A stretch of 64,000 nt of DNA from Kudoa neothunni (taxonomy: Eukaryota; Animalia; Cnidaria). The translations under genes and the position numbers were made by a program. The stretch lies in assembly GCA_964304625.1 (NCBI GenBank), contig OZ199838.1:13865002-13929001 (forward strand), in the 5' to 3' direction. Shown here piece after piece: positions 2,292 through 64,000 of the stretch (its first letter is position 1; the number at the start of each line of letters is the position of its first letter). Under the pieces are notes generated by a model. It saw nothing but the letters and a program-made list of their open reading frames with translations. It was not told where the DNA came from and did not search any database.

Positions 2292-5200
2292 TTAAATAGA
2301 GCTTGACTCTATTGATTTGGGAAATTTTTGATGAAGGCTTATTTTCAGAAAAATACATAAATTGAAAATTTTACTTGTTAACTTCGTAGAACTTTTTCAC
2401 ATTTGAAAAAGAAGTTCCTTTCATGATTGGTACAAGTCCTGTGGCCAATAAAGGGAAGCAACCCGCAAAACAACACATTTTATCAGTCAGAGGCAACCTA
2501 AAACAAAAGCGCTATTATAATTTGCACACTCAGTAAATTTTGATTACCAAGAACCCAATTGGTCGTTATACAAGTAAGTTGTGTAGTCATTCAATGTGAT
2601 AACTGGCTGTTTGGTTTCCGTGTGAATATCAACAGATTTAATACATCCAAAACTATTGTCTACGTGAAAAAAATTAATAGATTTCGCGCTATTATAAAAA
2701 AATTATTAAAAACCTTTAATATGATCCATTGGAACGTAAATATTATTATGAAGTATTTTCTGAGAAGATACATCCCTTTCAAAATTTATTTATCACATTT
2801 AGTAGTGTCAATATTACCACACTAAAATCTGGCCGAATGTGGTCACAGCAGAAATATACATTTGAGAAGATAAAAATAACCCAATAACAGTGTCTGAGAT
2901 GATTATCTGAGGAAAAATACGCCATCCGGAATAATTGAGCACATGCAGTCTGTTATCTTCTGTGGTGCAAACGATCATTTTCCTGTGAGAGCATACAAAT
3001 AAGAATTATATTATTAATATAGCTTATCCTGAAATAGATATTTCAGGATAAACTATAGGAATAGCATGTAATTACTCGCAGTACTTAATAAAAACAACTC
3101 TTCCCGATAATGAGTAACACCAGCATGGCTGGTTATTCTTCAAACAACGTAATTCATAGGTTTTCCAACCTAATTTTTTGATAAAAACACCGCCATATTA
3201 GATCAATAATAAACTTGGATTCTTTGATTCGTTTTTAATTGAAATATTATACATAACTTGATCGATATCGATAGTGAACTCATGAGAATTGGCTATGGGT
3301 GGTGTATTCACCTTGATAGAACTACCGAACGATCTTCTCGAAAAGACGCCAATAACGGTGGTGGAATCCGGTGGAGTATCGCAATTATTTGTCTGTCTCA
3401 TCAAGCGAGAAACATTAGTGGATTTATTACTTCTTTCAGGGAATGATTCGGCGTCTTCAAAATGAACAGCTTTCCTAAAAATATTCACAATAATACAAAT
3501 GCTTATTGCTGATCGTTAACTGGTCAGTGAGTGTACCTTTTGGACTTTTTAGGCTGAATGACAGTGCTATTTTCATTATCTCTACTTATCGAAGGGCTGT
3601 CTTCGATAGGAGCAGCAATAAGAATGGGTGTAATCCGTCTTCGCCCATCCTTCAGAATGGTTTCTTTCTGTTGATGAACAACCACGTCATTTGTTTCTAC
3701 AGAAGGATTCGTATCCGTAGGTTTAGATGTTACTTCAACATCTTGCTGTAATTGTCGGCTATTGTCTTCATCAACAGGGCTAACTTCGGCCCTGTCATTA
3801 CTGGTCTCAAAGCCATTCGACGATTCCATAAGCACGCCATTGGTGTGATTGATATCGAGGAAATCTGCGCTCATTGGAATATTGGGTATTTGATAGGCAG
3901 TCTTAATGCTCAGACCGTAATGTCTTTTGTGGTAGTCGGTTATTTCGCTAGCATTCAAAGGATACTGCCCTAAATCTTTCGCCGGATCGAATGTAACAAA
4001 TGACAGATTTCCTTCAACGCAAGACACCAACAAAATATTTCCTGTTGAATCCCTACGATTTAAAAAGATAAAGAGTTTTCGTCGATCCACACTCCAATAT
4101 ATACCAACTCATGTCTGCTATAGCAGATATGAACAAATTGTGCACAACAACGAATGGCCTTTTTTGCGGAAATTTCTAAATAAAATCGTCACATAAAATA
4201 TCGCTTTCTAATTCTTCAGCGGGCTGTCATTGGTGATTCGCACCTTTTAAACTATTTATTGGATTATTTTTTGAACGTAACAAATTTTATAAACTTAAAT
4301 CTATTAAAATGTACAGATACTTTTTCCACTTTTGTGTTTGATCAGTTAATGTTTTAATCATTAACAATAAATGCATCATTGTTTTACAGAAAACTTATCT
4401 CCACACATTAATCAGCTAACGATTATTAAAATTTGATATACATAACTATAATTAAAATAAAATAAATAAATAAAAAATATTTAGTAATGTACATTAATCT
4501 CATGCCATTCAAATTAAAAATTAAAGTCAGCGTTTATTAATTAAATGAATGATGAAAAATACGAAAAAAAGTACCATTTATACATATATTTCATGTATAA
4601 CGTTCAATATACGCGTTAATTTTAGGTATCGATTTTAAATGACCCGGCACTAATGAATAATTCGACGTGGACGAGACATTTAAATTTTTAAATAATAATC
4701 CGTTATTACTGAAATTAAAATCTGACTGTAATATTCAAATAGTTCTAATTCATTTGATTAATTTCTAAAACTGTATACTCCACCCCAGTTATCAACCATT
4801 CGCGGTACGTCCCTTGCATACGCTCATATTAAAAATTCAAACATAACCATAATGTTACTACATTTAAAACGTTATTAAAATATTTATTTGACGCATTTTA
4901 AAAGTAACGATATCATTTTAAATATATTTTTAAAAAATATAAAACAGAAGAAGCGGCAGTCAATATATGGAAAGGTACCTCATATGAGGCGAGGTTATAC
5001 GATACTTAACCCGTCAAAAAATTATGGGAATTTCGAGTTCAATGTTCGCGGTTGATAACGAGAGTATCCATTTAGTTAGCGAGTCGGATGATTGAAGATT
5101 ATTCACGCATTAAATATTGTCTTTCTCCAAATTAATTCTCAGTAATCATAAAACAGTTTATTATAATAAAATACAGTTCTAAGTAAATAAGAAGAGTGAT

Positions 5201-15258: not shown

Positions 15259-17074
15259 CAGTGGGTGACGGGTATTTGACACCTTTAGAATATCTAACGA
15301 AATAAAATAACGTGGAAGACAACAACTTTAAAAGAAGGTTGTAAATACATTTTAAAACTTATATTATTCAATTTAAAAAAATAAATATGTTTTCACTCGG
15401 GTTAGATATTAAATCGCGTACAATACTTCACTTTTGTAAAATATGGCTGATAAAAGGTGCAAAAAGTGATATCATCAGATTTTTTGAAAAGCAACAACCT
15501 AGAAATGCTATAAGTCAAACTGTGAAGCATTTTAAACTTGCTTCAATATCGACCCTAAATGGAATTTTAGCAAAAAAATCACAAATTTTCAATATTTATG
15601 AGAGTGGCTCAATTAAAAAAATAGATAAACTCTAAAAAAGGAGATAATGATGAAATCGGCAAAGAATTCTGCAAAGGTTCGAAATGTGTCAGTTATGGAC
15701 GGTTTCGCGGATTTAAAAATAGATTTAATCTCAGAAGATTTAACTTCATGGAGATTCTAGTACCGTGAGCGATGAAGTTGTGTCTGACTGGAAATCTCAA
15801 TTAGAATCTATAATGAAGAACGACGACAAAAATAAAATCTTTAACTTGGATGAAACTGCTTTATTCTACCAACAACATCCAAATAAAAACTTAAAATTTT
15901 TTGTTTCTGTACATTGATACCGTTTAGTTTATACTAAGTTAATTAATATTGAGACGAATGTTTATCATTCATTACTAACTCATTTTTAATGTTAATATTT
16001 CAACTTTTAAAGTTTAGTTCTGTGATAAGTCTATTTTTTAGATTTCTAGAAGGAATGATATTTTATAGATTCTATTTAGGAAGAAGTTATATTTCGTCAA
16101 ACGAGCCAAATCCCAAATGCACTAAACGGTCCAAAAAACGAATAACGCTATTACTTGGGGCCTCCTTAACACGAGAAAAGCTTGAGCCAATAGTCGTGGG
16201 CCATCATAGTCAACCAAGATGTTTTAAAAATTTAAAACGAAAACCGATCCCTTATTACTCAAATAAAAATGCCTGGATGATCACTGAAATATTTACTCAA
16301 TATTTAATCCAACAGAATCAAACATTCAAAAACAAAAATTTGAAAGTTTTATGTTTGGTGGACAATGCAAACTGTTACCCTTCATTAAGTCTTTCCAACA
16401 TTACGTTAATGTTTTTCCCAAAAAACACAACCTCTGTACTCCGACCGATGGATCAGGGTGTAATCAATTCGTTCAAGTCGATTTATAAGAAAAATTTGAT
16501 TGAAAAATATACATTTCACGTCAAAAATAACTTAGATATAAAGTCTATCGATATTTTGGATGCCTTGGTATTGATAAAGAAATCTTGGGAAAATGTCAGG
16601 CCGCAGACAATATCAAATTGTTTTCGAATGGCTGGCTTTATTTTCGAGAATAATAATACTGAAATTCCCCCTGTTCCATCCGAAGAATTAATCAATGTTG
16701 ACCAGACTTGCAATGAGTTAATGTAAAAATAGTCATTTGATGAAGAAGACGAAATTGAAAATATACCACATGATTCAACAGAGGCATCAAAATGTTTTGA
16801 ATACCTATAAGGCTATTTTAAACTATGCGGTTCTGATGTTTGGGGTTCACTTTATCGACTTGAAATGGAACTTTATAAGACATCGGAAAAAGTACGATTC
16901 AAACAAAAATATTAGATTAATTTAGTGATTCTAAGCATATTTTGAATTATTAATAAACACTTGTTTTAATAATGGATGTGAGCGCGTCGTTAGATGCCAA
17001 GTAGCCAACACTGCGGGTTATTTGACACTTTCCCCTCGGTCCCGTAGGGATTACGTAATTCCCGTCATCCACTG
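15259..17074 (+). mobile_element. Tigger/pogo DNA transposon with disrupted transposase
   Basis: TA-CAGTGGGTGACGGG ... CCCGTCATCCACTG termini; fragments IFNLDETALFY, SKKRITLLLG, NKNAWM, LVDNA, PKNTTSVLRPMDQGVINSFK, TISNCF; stops and frameshifts in the N-terminal part. Confidence 0.9.
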
Positions 17075-30831: not shown

Positions 30832-32567
30832 TTATGCCTTATGACATTTTATTGAACATTTTATATGCATATAACATTGGCAATTCGTACATAAATGTAT
30901 TATAGTTTTTTTACAAACTATACATCTACGTTTCTTTTTTACAGGATGGGTATTAAGCAAGGGTTTTTTGCACAATGATGACGCTTGGAGTTTGGATAGG
31001 GGCGATGTTCTGGTAAGTTTTTCGTGGTCACTAATGCTACTTAAACATGTTACGATATTTCGAATATGGTTTAACAATTTTATTTTTCCATCATTTGTAT
31101 AGGTAACCAATTTATATGAGTTAACCACAGCCAGGGATAACATATTGGTAAACAGGGGTCAGTATCATTTTTTAGATTTTATATTTACTCTGTAACATGA
31201 AACTGAAGCATCGACGACATCGACTCCTCCCATGTATTTATTATACATATAATATATGTAAGGTTGAGGAACGTTGTCGTATCTTTTTTTAGATTGGAAA
31301 TATCGTCGGATCTGTTGGACAGGTTCGGCATTTAGTGCATTACTCATTAGAACTACAGGTTTTGTGTCTCTCCAATATAGACAATTAATGCCAAATTCTT
31401 TATCCCTAAATGTTTCGAAGAAACCTCTCGATTTTTTTTCCATCACTTTATTTGTTGTAAGCGGGCATTTGGAGGTACGATCGGTTCTCACGGTGCCGGT
31501 TGCTTTGAGGGATCTTTTCTTCAGTTCAACGAACAATTTATAGGATGTGAAAAAATTGTCCATATAAATATGAGCGTTTAGTTTATCCTTAAGATCGTCC
31601 GCAAAATTCAGCACAACACTGCCACCGAGGCCAAAATATTTATCATATTTCGCCGACTTGCCTGTATAAACGTCAAAGCTATACACAAAACCATCCGCAG
31701 AGGCCAACATCCATTGCTTAAAACCAAATCGAATTGGTTTTCCTCTCATAAACATTTTGCATGAGTGGTGACCGGTATACGGAACCATCTGTTCATCAAC
31801 ACAAACGTTATTATGGAAAATACCAAATTTCTTAAAATTTGCGTTCAGTTTTTTTATTATTGGTGTAAGTTTGAAAAGTTTATCTTCAGGATCTAAATTG
31901 GCGTTATCATTCAAATGAATATATGATTTTATAGTCTTGAAGCGTTTATAGGACATGCATTTTCTGATAATATCAGCTCCAGAGTCCATTGCAGATCCCC
32001 AATACATATGCTGCTAGGATAATTTATTATATCCAGACAGTAGCGAAATACCAATGAATGATTTTAGTTCCTTTAACGATAAGTGGAAAGAATGGTCATT
32101 CTTCTGGCGAGCGTACAGATTACATTGTTTAGCAATGTGCATCAATGAACTTTCATCAAAAAATTCATAAAACGCTTCAAGTGAATCGTATTTTTCTTGC
32201 GAAATGTTTGCTGGCAATTCATTTTTGTTTTGTGAAAAAACATTAGTTTCCGCATCGGTTGATAAATTTGATGAAGAATTTTTTCGCGCTTGGCCATGGA
32301 ATTCTCAACAGTCTGACCATCATCTAATGTTGAAAATATCTCAACTTCCCCGCAAACTTGGGGGACATTCCTGATATCAACATTGTCGGAATCTAGGCCG
32401 ACAAAACTTTCTTCTTGGTTCGTTAAAATATCAACTGTTTCAGGAGGTAACGTTACAATCTCGATGCAACTAATTTCATCATTATTATCAATTTTATCAA
32501 CTGCGTCGATCAAATTCCTGTACCTCATCTCTCAGATAACAAATGTAGGATTATTAGGATTTAGCAT
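30832..32567 (-). pseudogene. piggyBac transposase pseudogene
   Basis: CVDEQMVPY, KPIRFGFK, YMDNFFTS, YNKYMGGVD and C-terminal RRCIVC..CTNC..HIKC, split over four ORFs. Confidence 0.93.
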
Positions 32568-46589: not shown

Positions 46590-48324
46590 ATGAGTTCAAC
46601 ATTTAAACTAAGAAACCCTAATCTCAAAGAAACTGACGATCATTTGCTCAGTTCTATCGACTACCATTTCAACAAGATTGTTGAAGTTGGCAATGAGGTT
46701 GATGGCGAAAAATCCGATACATCAGTTCAGTCGCACCTAAGCTATGAAAGAACCTATGAGGTTGTTCCAACCTCTCTAAAATTGCAGTTTAAAACCCAAA
46801 AACGAATACCAAAAGTAGGTGTTATGATGGTTGGAGTCGGTGGCAATAATGGAACCACCTTCACTGGTGTTGTATTGGCCAATCGACACAATCTTAAATG
46901 GGAAACAAAGCGTGGCACATTATCACCAAACTACTATGGAAGTTTGATCAAAAGTAGTACTATCCCTTTGGGTAGTATTCCAACACCTGACGAGAGTGAC
47001 ACTGTTCGTGAATTATGCGTACCTATGTGCGATTTGGTGCCAATTCTTGACCCAAACTCAATCGAAATCGATGGATGGGATATCAGCTCACTTAACATGG
47101 GAGATGCTATGAAGAGAGCTCAAGTGTTCGATGTAGATCTTCAAGAGAAACTCTATCCACTCATGAAAGATTTTACACCACGGAAGTCCATTTTTAATGT
47201 GGATTTCGTCGCATCCAATCAACAAGACCGTGCAGACAACATCCTAAGAGGTTCCTGGAAACAACAAATTGAAGCTATAAGAGCTGATATCAGAGATTTC
47301 AAACAGAAGAAACAACTCGATAAGTAATGACCACTCGTTGTTTTTATGACATTAGTGACAATGTTGATGGATTAATGTGCTGTGTGTTAGAATTATTGTC
47401 TTGTGGACTGCTAGCACAGAACGATTCTCCGAGGTGATTGTTGGAGTGAATGATACTATTGAGAACTTGATGAAAGCTGTTTCCATGGACGATCCCAAGC
47501 GAGTTGCTCCTTCAACGTTGTTCGGTATTGCCAGTGTACTTGAAGGATGCAGTTTTATCAACGGTTCGCCCCAAAACACACTTGTTCCAGGATTGGTGGA
47601 GTTGGCCGCACAAAATAATGTCCACCTTGCTGGAGACGACTTCAAAACTGGTCAAACTAAAATCAAATCCTCACTTGTTGAATTTTTGATTAATTCTGGC
47701 ATTAAACCTGTTTCGATCGTCAGCTACAACCATCTTGGTAATAATGATGGTCGCAATCTCAATGCACCCCCGCAATTCAAATCCAAAGAAATCACCAAAA
47801 GTGGAGTGATCGAAGACATGATCTCAACCAACAATGTGCTTTATGCACCAGGTGAAAAACCCGATCATTGCATTGTGATCAAGTATGTGCCTTACGTGGG
47901 TGACAGTAAACGCGCCATGGATGAGTATACCAGCGAAATCTGCATGCATGGTCTCAACACACTCGTCATTCATAACACCTGTGAAGATTCACTCCTGGCT
48001 GCCACAGTTATGCTTGATTTGGTGTTGCTCTGTGAATATCTCGAACGTGTCACCATTGGAGTTCAATCTGTTTCCATGTCTGCTCAACAGGCTGAAAGTG
48101 TGGGACTGAAAGATGCCACCGAATTCTCAGGATTCGACACTATCTTTTCGCCTCTATCCGTTCTTTTGAAATCCCCATGTACATCGGCTGGAGAGCCATC
48201 CATTAATGCCTTCTCCCGACAGCGCAACGCTGTTGAAAATCTTTTCCGTGCTTGTGTTGGACTAACTCCAAACAACCATATGCTTTTAGAGCATAGAGTT
48301 CCAAATATGCGACAATTTCTTTAG
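46590..48324 (+). CDS. INO1: Myo-inositol-1-phosphate synthase, 555 aa; exons 46590-47323 and 47391-48324
   Basis: [77 protein letters not shown]; one 67-nt GT-AG intron. Confidence 0.98.
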
Positions 48325-53908: not shown

Positions 53909-55001
53909 TATATGGGAAGAAACCCCTTGATTATATCACCTAAATGGTCGAATAAGGTGTAAATTATTCTCATTATTGTTTTTTACTACTAAAATACCAT
54001 TCAATTTATTCATTTAAATAAACAATACTTTATGTGATAAGATAATTCATATTTTCAATCATTTTGCTCTTTTTATAATTATTAGTTTTTTATATGTGAA
54101 ATATTTTGGTAGGCAAAAAAAATGATAAAACTGTCTATTATCATAAAATTAACTTGATAAATATAGGTCGCATAAGTCAATTTCGAATTTTATGGGTTAC
54201 AAATTAGTAAAATTAAATTTTGAATGCTCTTATTGTTTAATTTATTACAATAAATTCAATAAAATCCTCAATATTATAATTTTGATATTTACGTGGTTTC
54301 AAATATAGTGAAACGGTTTTTTGAATTGTTTAAAAAGAGATTATTGATATGCTTAGTAATTATAAAATTTTGATCGTTTTAATTTATATTGTAGAATGTT
54401 TTTGTACGAATTAGAAACAGTTCAAATGAGCTTTTAGTTAAAAGATTATTCTGTAATCAACCTGAGATAATTGAATCTAAAAAATATTAAAATCTATTTA
54501 TTGCTATTTACACAACAACCGTATTTAAAAATATTTTAAACTGATAAAAATTTATGAAATCACAAAGGATTTTTATTATTGAACTTTGATGACTCCTCGA
54601 GGATAAATTTGACATTATATGGATGATAAAAATATTTGATAATCGCAAAATGTTTACTTTAGAAATGAGATTCCAAATTAAATATTTAAAGTCTATTATT
54701 ATTTAAAAATTATTTTACCAAACAAATATCATGGAATTATTAGCTTGTCGAGAATGATACACAGACCTCAAATGGACCAATAAGAGGGAGAAATTGAGAA
54801 ATTTTCTTTTGGAGATTAAATTTCTAATATCAAACAATATATTTTTTAGTTTATAAAAATTATATAGACATAATGTGAAATATTGGCCTGATGTTTTACT
54901 TAAAAGTAGCGTTGTATTCGGTTAAACAAGAGGATACGATAAACATATATTAGATGGAAGACAATGTTGCCGAAAAGAAGAGGCTAGATTTACGGTGAGA
55001 T

Positions 55002-57298
55002 TTAATGTCTAAAATAATAGATAGCAGACAAAACAGAGCCACCTAAAATAATTGCCGCTATCCAGAGAAATAGACGATTCAGCATCTTTTTGGAAAAGGT
55101 AGATACGAAATTTGGTAGGGACTTTGCTTTAGGATGAAATGATTGGAAAGCGTTATTATGGTAGCTTTGGTTAGGCACTTGAATCTTCGGTGAGCATAGT
55201 TTTGGATTGTTCGCACACTAAAGTTGGTGTGATAATATTTACCATTCGAGATAAGCCTTACCAAACATGGACAACTATTAAAACACGGACATAACTCCTT
55301 TAATGCTAATTTATATCTGATTTTATCCAGAATTCGGGCTTTTGAATCTTCCAAAATAACTATAATAACCAAAGTTAGATTAACTATATTCAATAGGCAT
55401 CAAATACTGTCGCAAAAAATGTGCTGGTCACTATCAATAGGATCTTTGAAATAGAGATAAAATTCTTTCGGTTCTCGAGTTTCTGCAAACACTACAATTT
55501 GTTGTGTACGCTGGGTTTTGTCGAGAAAATCCTCACAGTCTTTAATCACTAACTATTATGACAATTTAAACAATCATGATCGAAAAAATAAATCTTTTAT
55601 AACAAACTTACATAATATAATGCTGGCTTTTCCCCTTTGTTACTAACAATGATTGTAAGTGGGTTGCCATGAACGCCATTTGATTTCTTTTGGGCCACGA
55701 AAATTGAGTCAATTTTTCCCAATGTACTATAGAACGTAACCATCATCTATAATTGGACATAAAATGAATAACCGGTATGAAGTAAGTGTAACGTTGCCAG
55801 CCGGAATTTTCAGTGATAAAAGAACAGAGATAGACTCATCGAGAAGGAAACTTATTTTATCTTGCCCAAAATGTGACACATTGCCAAATGCACTAATTAT
55901 ATTTTTTGGTGGCAGGCCAGAGTTAATAAGTTTCTAAAAAATTATTATTATTATTATTATTATCATCATTTTATCCAAAAAGATACTTGATCATTTTCGA
56001 CAAGATGGCGAATTTGGTTGTTCAAGCAACTATCCGAAAAGTCAATTAAGCTAATAGGAAAGTATGCCTACTATGATTTTTGCTGTCTACATCCATACAT
56101 ATTGCCAGGAAGACCCTGTTTTATGAAAGCCTTGTGGCTTGTCCCAATTTTGTCGCAGAGTTCACCCCTTAAATCAACTTTGGATTTATCAATAATCATC
56201 AGTTGGGTTTTCTAGTCAGTATTAAAAATATTATCCCAAATTGAACCACCTTGACAAATGGAAACTGTGAAGGGGTTAACAGAAATTTTGAGGAAAATTT
56301 ATCAGTTTGGAACAACGGCATAAGTGAACCCAAAATTTCCCCCTTAAACTAACATTTTTTACTTCCTTTCAAAAAATGAAACAAAATTTACACCATGCAA
56401 GTTTGAGATTGGTTTTTTCGGTGAGAGAATTGTCTTATACATCAATGAATTTGAGGTTAAAATAGAGTCATTTGATTTTTTGTATATCTCAAGTCGAATA
56501 GTATAGTTGAAATCGAATTCGCCAAACTCATATACATTGTACCTAAATCAAGATAAATTAGCTCTAATTAAAAAAATAACATAAACATTATATTCGAAAA
56601 GACAAGACAGTGGTAAGAAGCACTGTTATCTTTGAATGAACCGCACGTTAGTTCACCCCTGCTGTAGGGTTGTTCACCGAAAAAATCGCTCCTCAATCTA
56701 TCTTTGGAGGTGCACCAACAGCAAAAATACTACAATCCTAATTATAAATTGCTTACACACAAAATATATACCTGAGAAGGATTGGTGCAGTAATAGCTCA
56801 AATTTTTATATGGATAAATGCAAGCTTTGGCGGGGCTGAGCGTTGCTTTCGTGCCCAATTGAATAATATTTTCCTGGACATATTCATCAATTTGACTCTA
56901 TAATTTGTTGAAATATGCGTTCGAAGTTCTTATTTTTTAGTGATACTTTTGTATCTTTTATGACATAGTTTAATGTGGGTTGAGAAAGCTGAAGTCTAAT
57001 TTGAAGAGGTTGGTCTAAGTTGAGGGGGTGTTTCTCTTCGCTCATTGTCCATACCAAATCATAAAATATATTTTGTGATTCAAGCGACTGTGGAATATCT
57101 TAAAAGAGTCAATAAAGTTTTAAAAATTTTCGAGTTGCTTGATAAAGCAAACAACAATGATATTCGTGGAACACATTCGGTATTTCTGCTATTACAACTG
57201 ATGAGAGTATTTTTGTGTAAGATATTTATATTTGATCCTCTTATCGAATTCAGCCACAAAATTAATACTCCACCTAGTGAAAATAAAAGCATTAACAT
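55002..57298 (-). CDS. HAP2: HAP2/GCS1 class II gamete membrane fusogen, 582 aa, 13 exons
   Basis: Exons 57298-57139, 57098-56947, 56897-56772, 56729-56587, 56542-56392, 56348-56250, 56211-56072, 56029-55987, 55933-55773, 55726-55612, 55552-55408, 55359-55262, 55217-55002 (1749 nt, all phases compatible). Signal peptide; SQYFCCWC; SRGELTC; SYHCLVF..YNVYEFG; MIIDKSKVDLRGELCDKIGTSHKAF..GC..YCLNNQ; domain III VSNKGE..KDC..FCDIILED; C-terminal TM helix. Confidence 0.9.
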
Positions 57299-58275
57299 TT
57301 TATTAACAATTCTACTTAACTTCTGGATACCAAAGGCATTTCTAAGACATTACTATGGCAAAACCACCAATTTAATTTAACCCCAACATAAAGTCTTTAT
57401 TTATGAATCTACCACAAACGAAAAGATACATTCATTCTTTTATAATAGCCACTACTTATTAATTAAAAACAACTTGAATAATAAAGTAATTGTTAAATCT
57501 TTTTCAAATAAAATATTAATTTTAATTTTGTCACCATATCGAATATTTATTTGTCGACTTTAATCAAATATCTTTCTGTTAGATATGACCTGCATTGCTG
57601 TAATGAATTTTTGCTCGAATCTTCGGACCGCCTTATAACCGACTAAAGACATTACCCCTTTTAAGATTTATTATATCACAAACTTTTTAAATGAATATAA
57701 GCAAAAACAACAGTAATTATTTGGTAAATAAATGATGTTTTTCATTAAATATTTTTAAACGACCTTGTATATTATATGAATAAAGTTTACCGAGGGAATT
57801 ATATTTTTTCTTCACGTTGTTATTTGCTTTTTATTTAAGAATTAAAGATATATCTTTACATAAATTTATTTCTTATACACTTTTTATAATTTAAAATTGA
57901 AATAAATCAATTGTTTCATCGTTAAATGCAATATATGTGATATTATAATCAGGCAATATTTTTCATCCCCTTTCAGTTTAATAGTTTATCGCTGATACGA
58001 AAGTCCCCTATATACTAATTTTTAAAAAATTAAAAAAAGGAATCCGCAATAAGAAAATTGTTCAAAATGCTAATTAATTGTTTGAAAATTATTGAAATTG
58101 TAAAATTTTATAATATACATACTTTTTGGTAAATTTATTTCTAGATATATAGCCACATCCAACTATTTATCTATGTACACGGATGCGCGAAACTGCATAA
58201 AGTTATTAAGTGATTAATTTTAAGCATTTATCGTCACCCTCCTAAGGAACTATTTAAATATGTTACCTACTGTAA

Positions 58276-61740: not shown

Positions 61741-64000
61741 TTATTGGTCAGGAGAGTTGTTTTGTGTTGGAGCCTCTGCGTTGCTGTCATGAGCAGATTG
61801 CTGTAAAGCGTATCGAAGCAAATCGGCAGATGCACTAAAAGAGATAAATAATTCTTAAAACAAAAAGCTGTTTAAAAACCTTTCAACAAAATCCAAATTA
61901 GCCATCACTGTCATTTGATTAGGATCATCGCTATTACGGGTGGATCCATTTTCGAATCTTCGGTTGTTTGGTGAGTAGATGATTGGAGCAGACAATTCAG
62001 TCGCTGTATTGGGTGTACTTTGTTGAGTAGCGATACTAAAGCAACAACAATGAGATTGCTGCGAATCTTTTAATCTTTTAATTTCGTCGTTCTGTTCAAC
62101 AACAGTGCTACGTAGTTTGATTAGTTGTGAATTGATAGTATCAATTTGAGAGTTTAATTCATGTAGCGAATCACTGACAGTGTTGAGAAATGGTGAAACA
62201 AGATTCTTCAACTTGAAGAATTGTTGATGGAAATGCTCCATTGTTTGGTCCCCATTAGTCATTGCTCCAACAGCTGACGTGTTAGCATTGCTAGTTCTAC
62301 TTTTGGTGGTAGTAGTGATATCAGTGTGGCTCGGATTGAGACTTATATAGGAAGAATCATTTGATGTAATATTTCCAAGATGACCGTGGATAGGGGGGGT
62401 TTGATGTAAAGGAGAATTTTTATCGGTAAAACTATCAAAATTTTGATCTGGAATGGATTTGGTGGTGGTATTGTCAGCATCAACACTAATCAACACATGG
62501 TGATCCTTAATGTGCTGGATCAGTTGATGAATGTACTGAAATATCGTTTCATCTTTCTTTTTGGAACAATCATTCCAACAGCAAACATAAGCCACTTCGC
62601 TATTGTCCATATTCTCAATGATGTTTGCTGATGAACGTTTAGGCGAAAATCGATGAATTTTCATAATATGATCCAACGTTTGATCGTTGGTTTGAAAATG
62701 GGTGTTACAATTATCCCATTTACAAATGCAGCTGAGAGTGTCCACCTGTGGCTCATAAGTGGTTGAATGAACCTGACGTTTGGCGGGAACTGAATAAGAG
62801 TTTGAATTACCAGTTGTATCAGCAGATGAGGTATATTGAGAAGATTTTGGGGTGGATATTGATAGAATTGATTTTCTATGGGTGGATGAACGACGTTTTT
62901 TGTTGCCAGTAGCGCTAAGTGTGGAATCATCATTTCTAACTTCCGAGTTAGGTACACTTGCTCGCTTTTCGTTAATCTTGAGAACCTCTTTAAGCAGAAA
63001 AGGTGAGGGTACTTTGTAGATTTTGTCTGTGTCTTCTGATTTCAAAGAAATGCACTCATCATAAATCATATGAGGATGTGAATGGATTTTATTTCGAAAG
63101 GGTTTGCTCTTACGTATTTGGTTAGTTTGTAGGTTGTATGATGATTCGCACAGAAAAACGTCAGATGCATTATGCAAGATTGGATATCGAGAGTAGTAAT
63201 AATTGGGGTGGATTACAAAACAATTCGAATAGATACAATCAATATTTTGTATCACTTCCATGTTAGTTTTGAACACTTCGTTAGGGTAGAACATTCGAAA
63301 AGCTGTGTGTTTGAAATCGTCAGGAAAATACAAAATAATAGCTTTGAACATGTATTGGCCCTGCTTGTCCTTCCAAATGTCGATAATTTTGCCAACAGTG
63401 AGTTCATCTTCTTTATCGTAGAGATAGACATATTGATCTTTGCGATAGAAGGTGTCATTCCAAGCAACTTGAAGGTAATGAACTAGGCCATCATCACTCG
63501 TCAATCCTGTTGTGATATCTTTAATTGAACGAGCATTGTTAATCGTAAGAGAATTTTTCAAGTTAGAGACATCGTAGGTATGTATATTTTGAGATTTTCG
63601 GTTGGTGGCTTCTAACGTAACGCAGCGATTGAAACGATCGGCAGATTTAATTGCTTGATCATGAGTAGGATCTTGGTTAGTCGACGATTTTGAAAAATTT
63701 TCAATAACTGGTGCAGGAGGATTCACAAAAAACTGATGGATGAAAAAGTATTCGTCCGATTCATAGCTGTAAAAATGATCGTAAAATGACACATCGGTGT
63801 AGGTATTAGGCAGAAGCATGTGGAATGGAGAGTAAAAGATATTATCAACTTTTGATTCAATTTCAGTCACTGGATAAATCACGAGATGATCAGTCACAAT
63901 CAACTCCTAGTTTACTAATCAAAACACCACAAAGAACACGCTTATAAACATACCGACTTAAAATAGTTGCGGGTGTATTTTCGAGGTAAATCCACATAGT
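61741..64000 (-). CDS. PBRM1: Polybromo-1 (BAF180)-like, 3' part: end of BAH1, BAH2, two C2H2-like fingers, coiled coil; 5' end outside window
   Basis: Exons >64000-63954, 63906-61880, 61834-61741; BAH2 YVYL..VGKIIDIWKD..MFYPNEVFKT..DVFLCES; CKWDNC..HIMKIH and CCWNDC..HIKDHH as in invertebrate polybromo. Confidence 0.82.

Follow-up and report, generated by a model that had tools for sequence, protein, structure and literature searches.

An apparently intact HAP2/GCS1 family gene in Kudoa neothunni, a candidate gamete fusogen of a parasitic cnidarian

Introduction

Some protists carry more than one gene of the HAP2/GCS1 family of class II-type membrane fusogens (HAP2 and HAP2p in Plasmodium; HapA and MrhA in Dictyostelium), with hints that the copies have divided their roles. 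The tuna-muscle parasite Kudoa neothunni, a member of the Myxozoa and a relative of jellyfish, resembles these protists in having more than one HAP2-family gene in its genome, but is an animal. Here we describe one of these genes, termed paralogue A, which lies on the minus strand, from 57298 to 55002, of a window of 64,000 nucleotides (nt) of K. neothunni DNA (contig OZ199838.1, positions 13,865,002 to 13,929,001; the window is the whole stretch analysed). Judged from its sequence, the locus is a genuine, intact HAP2/GCS1 family gene. It is a member of a known family and not a new kind of gene, and was to be expected in a cnidarian.

Structures have been solved for HAP2/GCS1 proteins of Chlamydomonas reinhardtii, Arabidopsis thaliana, Trypanosoma cruzi and other organisms (PDB 5mf1, 5ow3, 5ow4, 7s0k). 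The product of paralogue A belongs to the same Pfam family (PF10699), and has in common with these proteins the motifs SQ.FCC.C, C(D/N)KIG..S..AF and C-x6-CL..Q, the invariant Arg, the domain III cysteines and a type I layout. It is nevertheless very divergent, scoring ∼45 bits against individual references, and differs from the solved proteins in having its own domain II loop sequence (SKDRLRSDFFGEQPY), one replaced Cys, YHCLV in place of AHCLR, no first domain III disulfide, and a tail of two residues where the others have long regulatory tails.

HAP2 is also present in the free-living cnidarians Hydra, Nematostella and Acropora, which share their phylum with Kudoa and in which the expected role is in male-type gametes; in Hydra, expression is found only in spermatogenic cells (PMC2766252). 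Given the shared phylum, vertical inheritance is the simplest origin for the Kudoa gene, and finding HAP2 in a cnidarian meets a specialist's expectation and is a modest surprise. Kudoa differs from its free-living relatives in possessing three paralogues, and in that its sexual stage and definitive host are unobserved; the life cycle of Kudoa species has not been worked out, with an annelid only assumed as the definitive host (PMC11907682). Outcrossing and meiosis are poorly documented in myxozoans (PMC12239612), and no report of HAP2/GCS1 in Myxozoa was found in the literature searched.

Results

An in-frame gene of 13 small exons

An initial annotation of the window, made from the sequence alone, had proposed that 13 exons of 43–216 nt splice in frame to a HAP2/GCS1 protein of 582 amino acids (aa), in a divergent and probably parasitic animal. 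The host is indeed a parasitic cnidarian, the myxozoan K. neothunni, and the exon structure was reproduced between 57298 and 55002 with one terminal stop, although the resulting model encodes 577 aa and not 582. This model starts with an ATG at 57298 and ends with a TAA at 55004–55002; its exons (Table 1) total 1734 nt (577 codons plus the stop) and are separated by 12 introns of 38–59 nt, every one of them GT-AG, the terminal stop being the only one in the frame. The acceptor reads TAG in 11 of the 12 introns (window 55218–57034), and also in all five orthologous introns of a related species (scaffold L006, see below), which suggests an extended TAG acceptor signal in the very short introns of Kudoa. 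The guanine-plus-cytosine (GC) content was 35.5% in the exons and 13–36% in the introns, that of the window being 27–34%; the values published for K. neothunni are 30.4% for the genome, 36.8% for exons and 26% for introns, with an intron length of 49 bp (PMC12239612). The gene had been described as hidden. It does escape a track of open reading frames (ORFs) of at least 60 aa, which on the minus strand displays two fragments only (57080–57298 and 55079–55393), as had been noted, but it is otherwise just a normal intron-rich gene.

Gene structure, family membership, selection and topology signals were all read from the sequence. To reach a stop-free frame from start to stop, a dynamic-programming search required at least 12 GT-AG introns on the real strand and 16 on the antisense strand. 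When the sequence was shuffled, 15–20 introns were required in 18 of 30 cases, and no path was available in the remaining 12. An open spliced frame is, on its own, moderately unusual, and so suggestive but not decisive; the weight is therefore carried by homology and by conservation across species. A naive minimum-intron gene finder mis-chose 3 of the 12 introns of paralogue A, and its model for paralogue B is unreliable.

Intron 1, which lies outside the orthologue fragment described below, is the least certain junction. The position 57088–57034 was chosen as the only one that leaves the homologous stretches on both sides in frame. On its exon 1 side, the stretch following C42 (VPRISLLFALSSNSK...) aligns without gaps to four reference HAP2s, and is similar also to paralogue C and to the orthologue of paralogue B. 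Two alternatives, 57174–57099 and 57172–57088, were discarded as they lose the block homologous to the other HAP2s and the paralogues. An intron at 56098–56051 was likewise rejected: it removes a conserved MYGC...C motif, and the alignment with the orthologue places intron 7 at 56071–56030.

Membership of the HAP2/GCS1 family

Pfam and PDB were searched with single exons or stop-free stretches. Against the Pfam HAP2-GCS1 family (PF10699; 515 positions, curated cut-off 27.4 bits), exon 7 alone scored 33.7 bits (E = 2e-8, positions 253–283), above the cut-off, while weak matches were returned in the correct order by the exon 4 region (116–161), exon 5 (157–206) and exon 8 (291–306). A six-frame search of the whole genome with PF10699 gave 46.3 bits (E = 2.3e-11) at window 55987–56550, and among PDB sequences exon 7 matched the solved HAP2 chains 5ow4, 7s0k and 5mf1 best. 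The family identity proposed in the initial annotation is thus upheld by a match above the cut-off and a series of ordered weaker ones. When exons 1–3, 6 and 9–13 were used singly, no HAP2 match was found in Pfam; in the PDB sequence searches by exon, exons 4 and 9 found no match, and exon 10 just a chance match to an RRM. Such missing matches are expected of queries as short as these (45–70 residues) and are not evidence against homology.

The joined model was also compared locally with four HAP2 references (P0003 to P0006, which score 128–340 bits on PF10699), of which P0006 and P0005 are strong members of the family at 293 and 340 bits, respectively. Local phmmer alignment joined aa 43–347 to P0006 (45 bits) and aa 138–366 to P0005 (43 bits). 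For domain III, aa 368–479 aligned with residues 414–529 of P0005 at a local score of 82, a value reached by none of 500 shuffles (42.8 ± 7.3; z = 5.4). In a MAFFT alignment with the four references, no gap fell at any of the 12 exon junctions. A Cys was found in 9 of the 10 columns in which three or four references carry one, with both cysteines of the CL..Q region and both aligned cysteines of domain III (C431 and C472) in place.

All the motifs named in the initial annotation, including the domain III cysteines, were found, although the pattern beginning G..CDKIG compresses the real spacing. SQYFCCWC occupies aa 140–147, SRGELTC aa 164–170, SYHCL aa 179–183, and GELCDKIGTSHKAF...YGCRQQKSYCLNNQ aa 288–324. 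R165, within SRGELTC, aligned with the invariant fusion-loop Arg in all four references; L006 keeps this Arg, as do paralogues B and C. In Chlamydomonas HAP2 the invariant residue, at the tip of domain II, is R185, and a conserved salt bridge to a Glu (E126) has been described (PMC6089408). The candidate for this Glu in paralogue A, which L006 keeps, is E104 according to the multiple sequence alignment, where it stands under the reference Glu, or E108 according to the comparison with paralogue C.

Conservation in a related species and selection on paralogue A

A word search with exon 7 found an ORF of 42 aa (P0007) with 88% aa identity to that exon; a similar search with exon 1 found no database protein sharing enough words. 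The scaffold that carries P0007 (L006; 929 bp, from a metagenome assembly in ENA) comes from a related species and covers exons 3–8. When L006 was compared with window 56000–56960, exons 3–8 showed 78% nt identity over 689 nt with zero indels, whereas introns 3–7 showed 50% nt identity, with indels present and GT...TAG kept in five out of five. Exon 3, for example, is 84% identical at the nt level and free of indels, while the introns on both its sides have diverged, and conservation restarts exactly at the acceptor of exon 8 (GGATAG followed by TTG). The boundaries of introns 3–7, and the 43-nt exon 8, are confirmed by this contrast between exons and introns.

Over the 229 codons compared, aa identity was 78.6% and no stop was present. 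The proportions of non-synonymous and synonymous differences (pN and pS) were 0.11 and 0.62, which gives a ratio of the corresponding substitution rates (dN/dS) of ∼0.09, a rough figure as dS is 1.3 and thus near saturation; there is no doubt about the contrast itself. With exons conserved, introns diverged and dN/dS at this level, paralogue A can be taken to be under purifying selection. A dN/dS check had been proposed when the gene was annotated, and it rejects neutral evolution for the 40% of the gene that L006 covers; exons 1–2 and 9–13 fall outside it. Within the loop SDFFGEQ.YSRGELTCGSF, a single residue differs between K. neothunni and L006.

These data bear on whether the locus might be a decaying pseudogene, or a frame left open by the chance threading of GT-AG pairs. 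An in-frame GT-AG path did exist in 18 of the 30 shuffles, and RNA lent no support to the gene, since no reads from three RNA runs, and nothing from one RNA contig set, could be placed on window 54600–57700 (runs for which the parasite's presence was not demonstrated). The paths through the shuffles, however, always had more introns, with 15–20 or no path at all compared with the 12 needed here; the Pfam matches are correctly ordered and one of them exceeds the cut-off; every junction is gapless against the reference HAP2s; and dN/dS is ∼0.09, with no stop or indel in 229 codons beside introns ∼50% identical. An origin by decay or chance is extremely improbable, and the pseudogene reading, strongly disfavoured by the comparison with L006, appears essentially excluded.

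Membrane topology

In a Kyte-Doolittle analysis with 19-residue windows, values above 1.6 were obtained only at aa 1–2 and aa 551–557, which leaves two hydrophobic segments in the protein, one at the N-terminus and one of 21 residues at aa 555–575. Five N-x-S/T sequons lie between them. The arrangement fits the type I membrane protein that the initial annotation had described, with a predicted signal peptide, a large ectodomain and a single C-terminal anchor. A glycosylphosphatidylinositol (GPI) anchor was considered, as only two residues separate the hydrophobic segment from the stop, but was set aside: the candidate omega sites are not followed by a small omega+2 residue, and a segment of 21 residues can span the membrane.

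Three HAP2 paralogues on one chromosome

The six-frame search with PF10699 detected three loci in the K. neothunni genome (A, B and C), all on chromosome C1. In the best-conserved exons, A is 41–42% identical to C and 26–29% identical to B; C is the closest to A, and exon 4 of A is 41% identical to C at E = 1e-7. All three share a signal-peptide-like start, an N-terminal Cys pair, FCC.C, R-G-x-x-x-C, C(N/D)KIG and a C-terminal hydrophobic anchor, and the intron positions flanking the equivalent of exon 7 appear to be common to them too. Paralogue B ends in a C-terminal transmembrane segment followed by a 12-residue tail. It lacks introns across the region matching exons 3–5 of A, and seems to have one long intron of ∼0.7 kb. 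The loop between FCC.C and the Arg is long and contains paired Phe residues in A and C, and is very short in B (CCRCPSVRGKSTC) and in its orthologue.

A search of representative proteins with the 207-aa exon of B yielded six matches. The orthologue of B (P0001), found on a Logan contig (L005; 19% GC, neighbours conserved) from a Kudoa-like species, is 45% identical to it. Set against the 26–29% identity of B to A, this places the duplication that separated A from B before the split between the species. A, B and C are old, divergent HAP2 paralogues that share one chromosome. In the literature searched, no description was found of three HAP2 copies in an animal whose gene set is strongly reduced; such a family could show how fusion loops diversify.

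The paralogues may conceivably, though this is clearly doubtful, have divided the work among them, with one copy per gamete type, or with at least one co-opted for somatic, plasmodial or cell-in-cell fusion. The near-tailless anchor of A could belong to such a specialisation and, if true, co-option would be the first case of an animal HAP2 serving a purpose other than gamete fusion. For paralogue A in particular, the proposal would be that it is a working fusogen, co-opted or subfunctionalised for non-gametic fusion, while another paralogue serves the gametes; candidate processes in myxozoans are plasmodium formation, sporoplasm or nuclear-cycle events, and cell-in-cell stages. Three divergent HAP2 loci have been kept among only ∼5,300 predicted genes (PMC12239612), which speaks for this proposal. 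So do the differences between the fusion-loop regions, long and with FF in A and C but very short in B and its orthologue, and an A/B split older than that of the species. However, no animal is known to us to use HAP2 somatically, and co-option of A is unlikely. The restriction of Hydra HAP2 to spermatogenic cells (PMC2766252) points the same way.

Proposed function

Gamete fusion in the sexual phase is the simplest reading of paralogue A, because the Hydra gene is expressed in spermatogenic cells only. Taking the results jointly, there is a reasonable probability that the locus is an intact, selected HAP2 family gene that encodes a gamete-surface fusogen of the parasite's sexual stage. Two meiosis-associated genes were detected elsewhere in the genome, Mnd1 (36.1 bits; G000:C1:16980977-16981069, minus strand) and Hop2/TBPIP (36.3 bits; G000:C1:8785873-8785956, minus strand), and their presence fits retained sex. 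The N-terminal domain of Spo11 (TP6A_N, PF04406) was not detected in a six-frame genome search, which is uninformative given a short domain and intron-rich genes.

The expression stage, trimerisation and fusogenic activity of the protein are those that we infer for a gamete fusogen of this family. The ∼577-aa product would consist of a signal peptide, an ectodomain matching HAP2 domains I-II-III, a Cys-rich stem and a C-terminal anchor that is almost tailless; going by the family, it would be displayed on the gamete surface in the sexual stage, presumably in the annelid host. The conserved aromatic loop that leads up to Arg165 (SDFFGEQPY) would insert into the partner membrane, the inserted residues of the domain II tip probably being F157, F158 and Y163, beside the R165 scaffold. 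Trimers would then form, and domain III and the stem would fold back, drawing the anchor and the loops together so that the two membranes merge.

Several observations weigh against this assignment. The existence of three paralogues makes the gamete role of this particular copy uncertain, and the RNA search described above offered no support. The boundaries of exons 1–2 and 9–13 were set by alignment with homologues and paralogues and by the splice consensus only, and intron 1 has an atypical pair of splice signals (GTCGCT...GAG). The tail that follows the anchor is just Arg-His, and Arabidopsis HAP2 requires its C-terminal domain (PMC2841615). Exon 4, which carries the fusion loop, scored 10.6 bits on PF10699 compared with 25.3 for that of paralogue C. 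One canonical cysteine is replaced (G114), with an extra one, C136, nearby; P0005 has a first domain III disulfide that is missing here; and AHCLR reads YHCLV.

Some of these departures would also suit a protein that has retained the HAP2 scaffold while losing the ability to fuse membranes, and that serves in surface adhesion or recognition, or as a regulatory partner of another paralogue: with 10.6 Pfam bits, A is the most derived of the three copies in the fusion-loop exon, the AHCLR motif and one of the canonical cysteines are gone, and it has essentially no cytoplasmic tail. A loss of fusion is nonetheless distinctly improbable, as the protein still has the invariant Arg and the aromatic loop, both of which hardly vary from one species to the other, as well as its membrane anchor; the tip of domain II is under strong selection; and HAP2 fusion loops in any case vary widely (PMC6089408).

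Intact and selected HAP2 genes, together with Mnd1 and Hop2, represent genomic evidence that sexual-type membrane fusion is still in use in this parasite. HAP2 transcripts could serve as probes for where and when Kudoa sex occurs, in candidate polychaetes, environmental metatranscriptomes or fish-stage material.

Table 1. Features of the HAP2 locus in the window, and location of the two other paralogues
Feature	Position	Strand	Description
Exon 1	57089..57298	-	210 nt, aa 1-70; start ATG, N-terminal Cys pair C35/C42
Signal-peptide-like segment	57298-57236	-	In exon 1, aa 1-21
Intron 1	57034..57088	-	55 nt, GTCGCT...GAAGAG; sole non-TAG acceptor
Exon 2	56947..57033	-	87 nt, aa 71-99; PLQIRLQLSQPTLNY block aligns with reference HAP2s and paralogue C
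Exon 3	56772..56897	-	126 nt, aa 100-141; candidate salt-bridge Glu (E104/E108), C125, C136; terminal SQ
Exon 4	56587..56729	-	143 nt; YFCCWC, Arg165, SYHCL
Candidate fusion loop SDFFGEQPYSRGELTC	56690-56643	-	In exon 4; includes Arg165
Exon 5	56392..56542	-	151 nt; boundaries confirmed by exon/intron conservation contrast with L006
Exon 6	56250..56348	-	99 nt; boundaries confirmed with L006; GEILGSLMPLFQTDKFSSKFLLTP block aligns with reference HAP2s
Exon 7	56072..56211	-	140 nt; core HAP2 motif GELCDKIGTSHKAF at 56166-56125, C313
Exon 8	55987..56029	-	43 nt; holds CLNNQIRHLVENDQ; acceptor confirmed by L006
(ATT)n microsatellite	55941..55974	.	11.7 copies, fills most of intron 8
Exon 9	55793..55933	-	141 nt; end of domain II/I and linker; gapless junctions against P0005 and P0006; outside L006
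Exon 10	55612..55746	-	135 nt; first part of domain III
Exon 11	55408..55552	-	145 nt; domain III with C431 and C472, both aligned to P0005 cysteines
Exon 12	55262..55359	-	98 nt; end of domain III (IILEDSKARILD), start of Cys-rich stem
Exon 13	55002..55217	-	216 nt; stem, transmembrane segment, two-residue tail (RH), TAA
Transmembrane segment	55073-55011	-	aa 555-575; highest Kyte-Doolittle peak at aa 555
Paralogue B	G000:C1:15608255-15609270	+	L001/L003/L007; 207-aa single exon, 58.7 bits on PF10699
Paralogue C	G000:C1:6366594-6366749	-	L004; exons with 25-35 bits on PF10699

Other features of the window and genome

A gene for myo-inositol-1-phosphate synthase occupies window 46590–48324 on the plus strand, in two long exons with matches to PF07994 and PF01658 (E down to 8e-57). 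Being a well-conserved housekeeping gene, it could be used for phylogenetic placement. Two transposase ORFs were found, one of the piggyBac type (DDE_Tnp_1_7, E = 2e-55; window 31165–32007, minus strand) and one of the pogo/Tigger type (DDE_1, E = 3e-34; window 15989–16726, plus strand). Each is either the remnant of a transposon or a domesticated copy; repeats are reported to make up ∼45% of this genome.

On the minus strand, a single ORF of 682 aa with a BAH domain (49 bits) lies at window 61855–63903. A search of 5.8 billion proteins found no homologue for it at E ≤ 1e-10, and this shows the fast divergence of the lineage. Another minus-strand ORF, at window 3524–4090, carries a HIRA B motif (36.6 bits) and probably belongs, as one exon, to a gene for a HIRA-like histone chaperone. 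Elsewhere in the genome, the sole (TAAACC)n array lies at ∼12.04 Mb on contig 2 (G000:C2:12039536-12040069); this single array matches the published K. neothunni assembly, in which (TAAACC)n is found at one chromosome end (PMC12239612).

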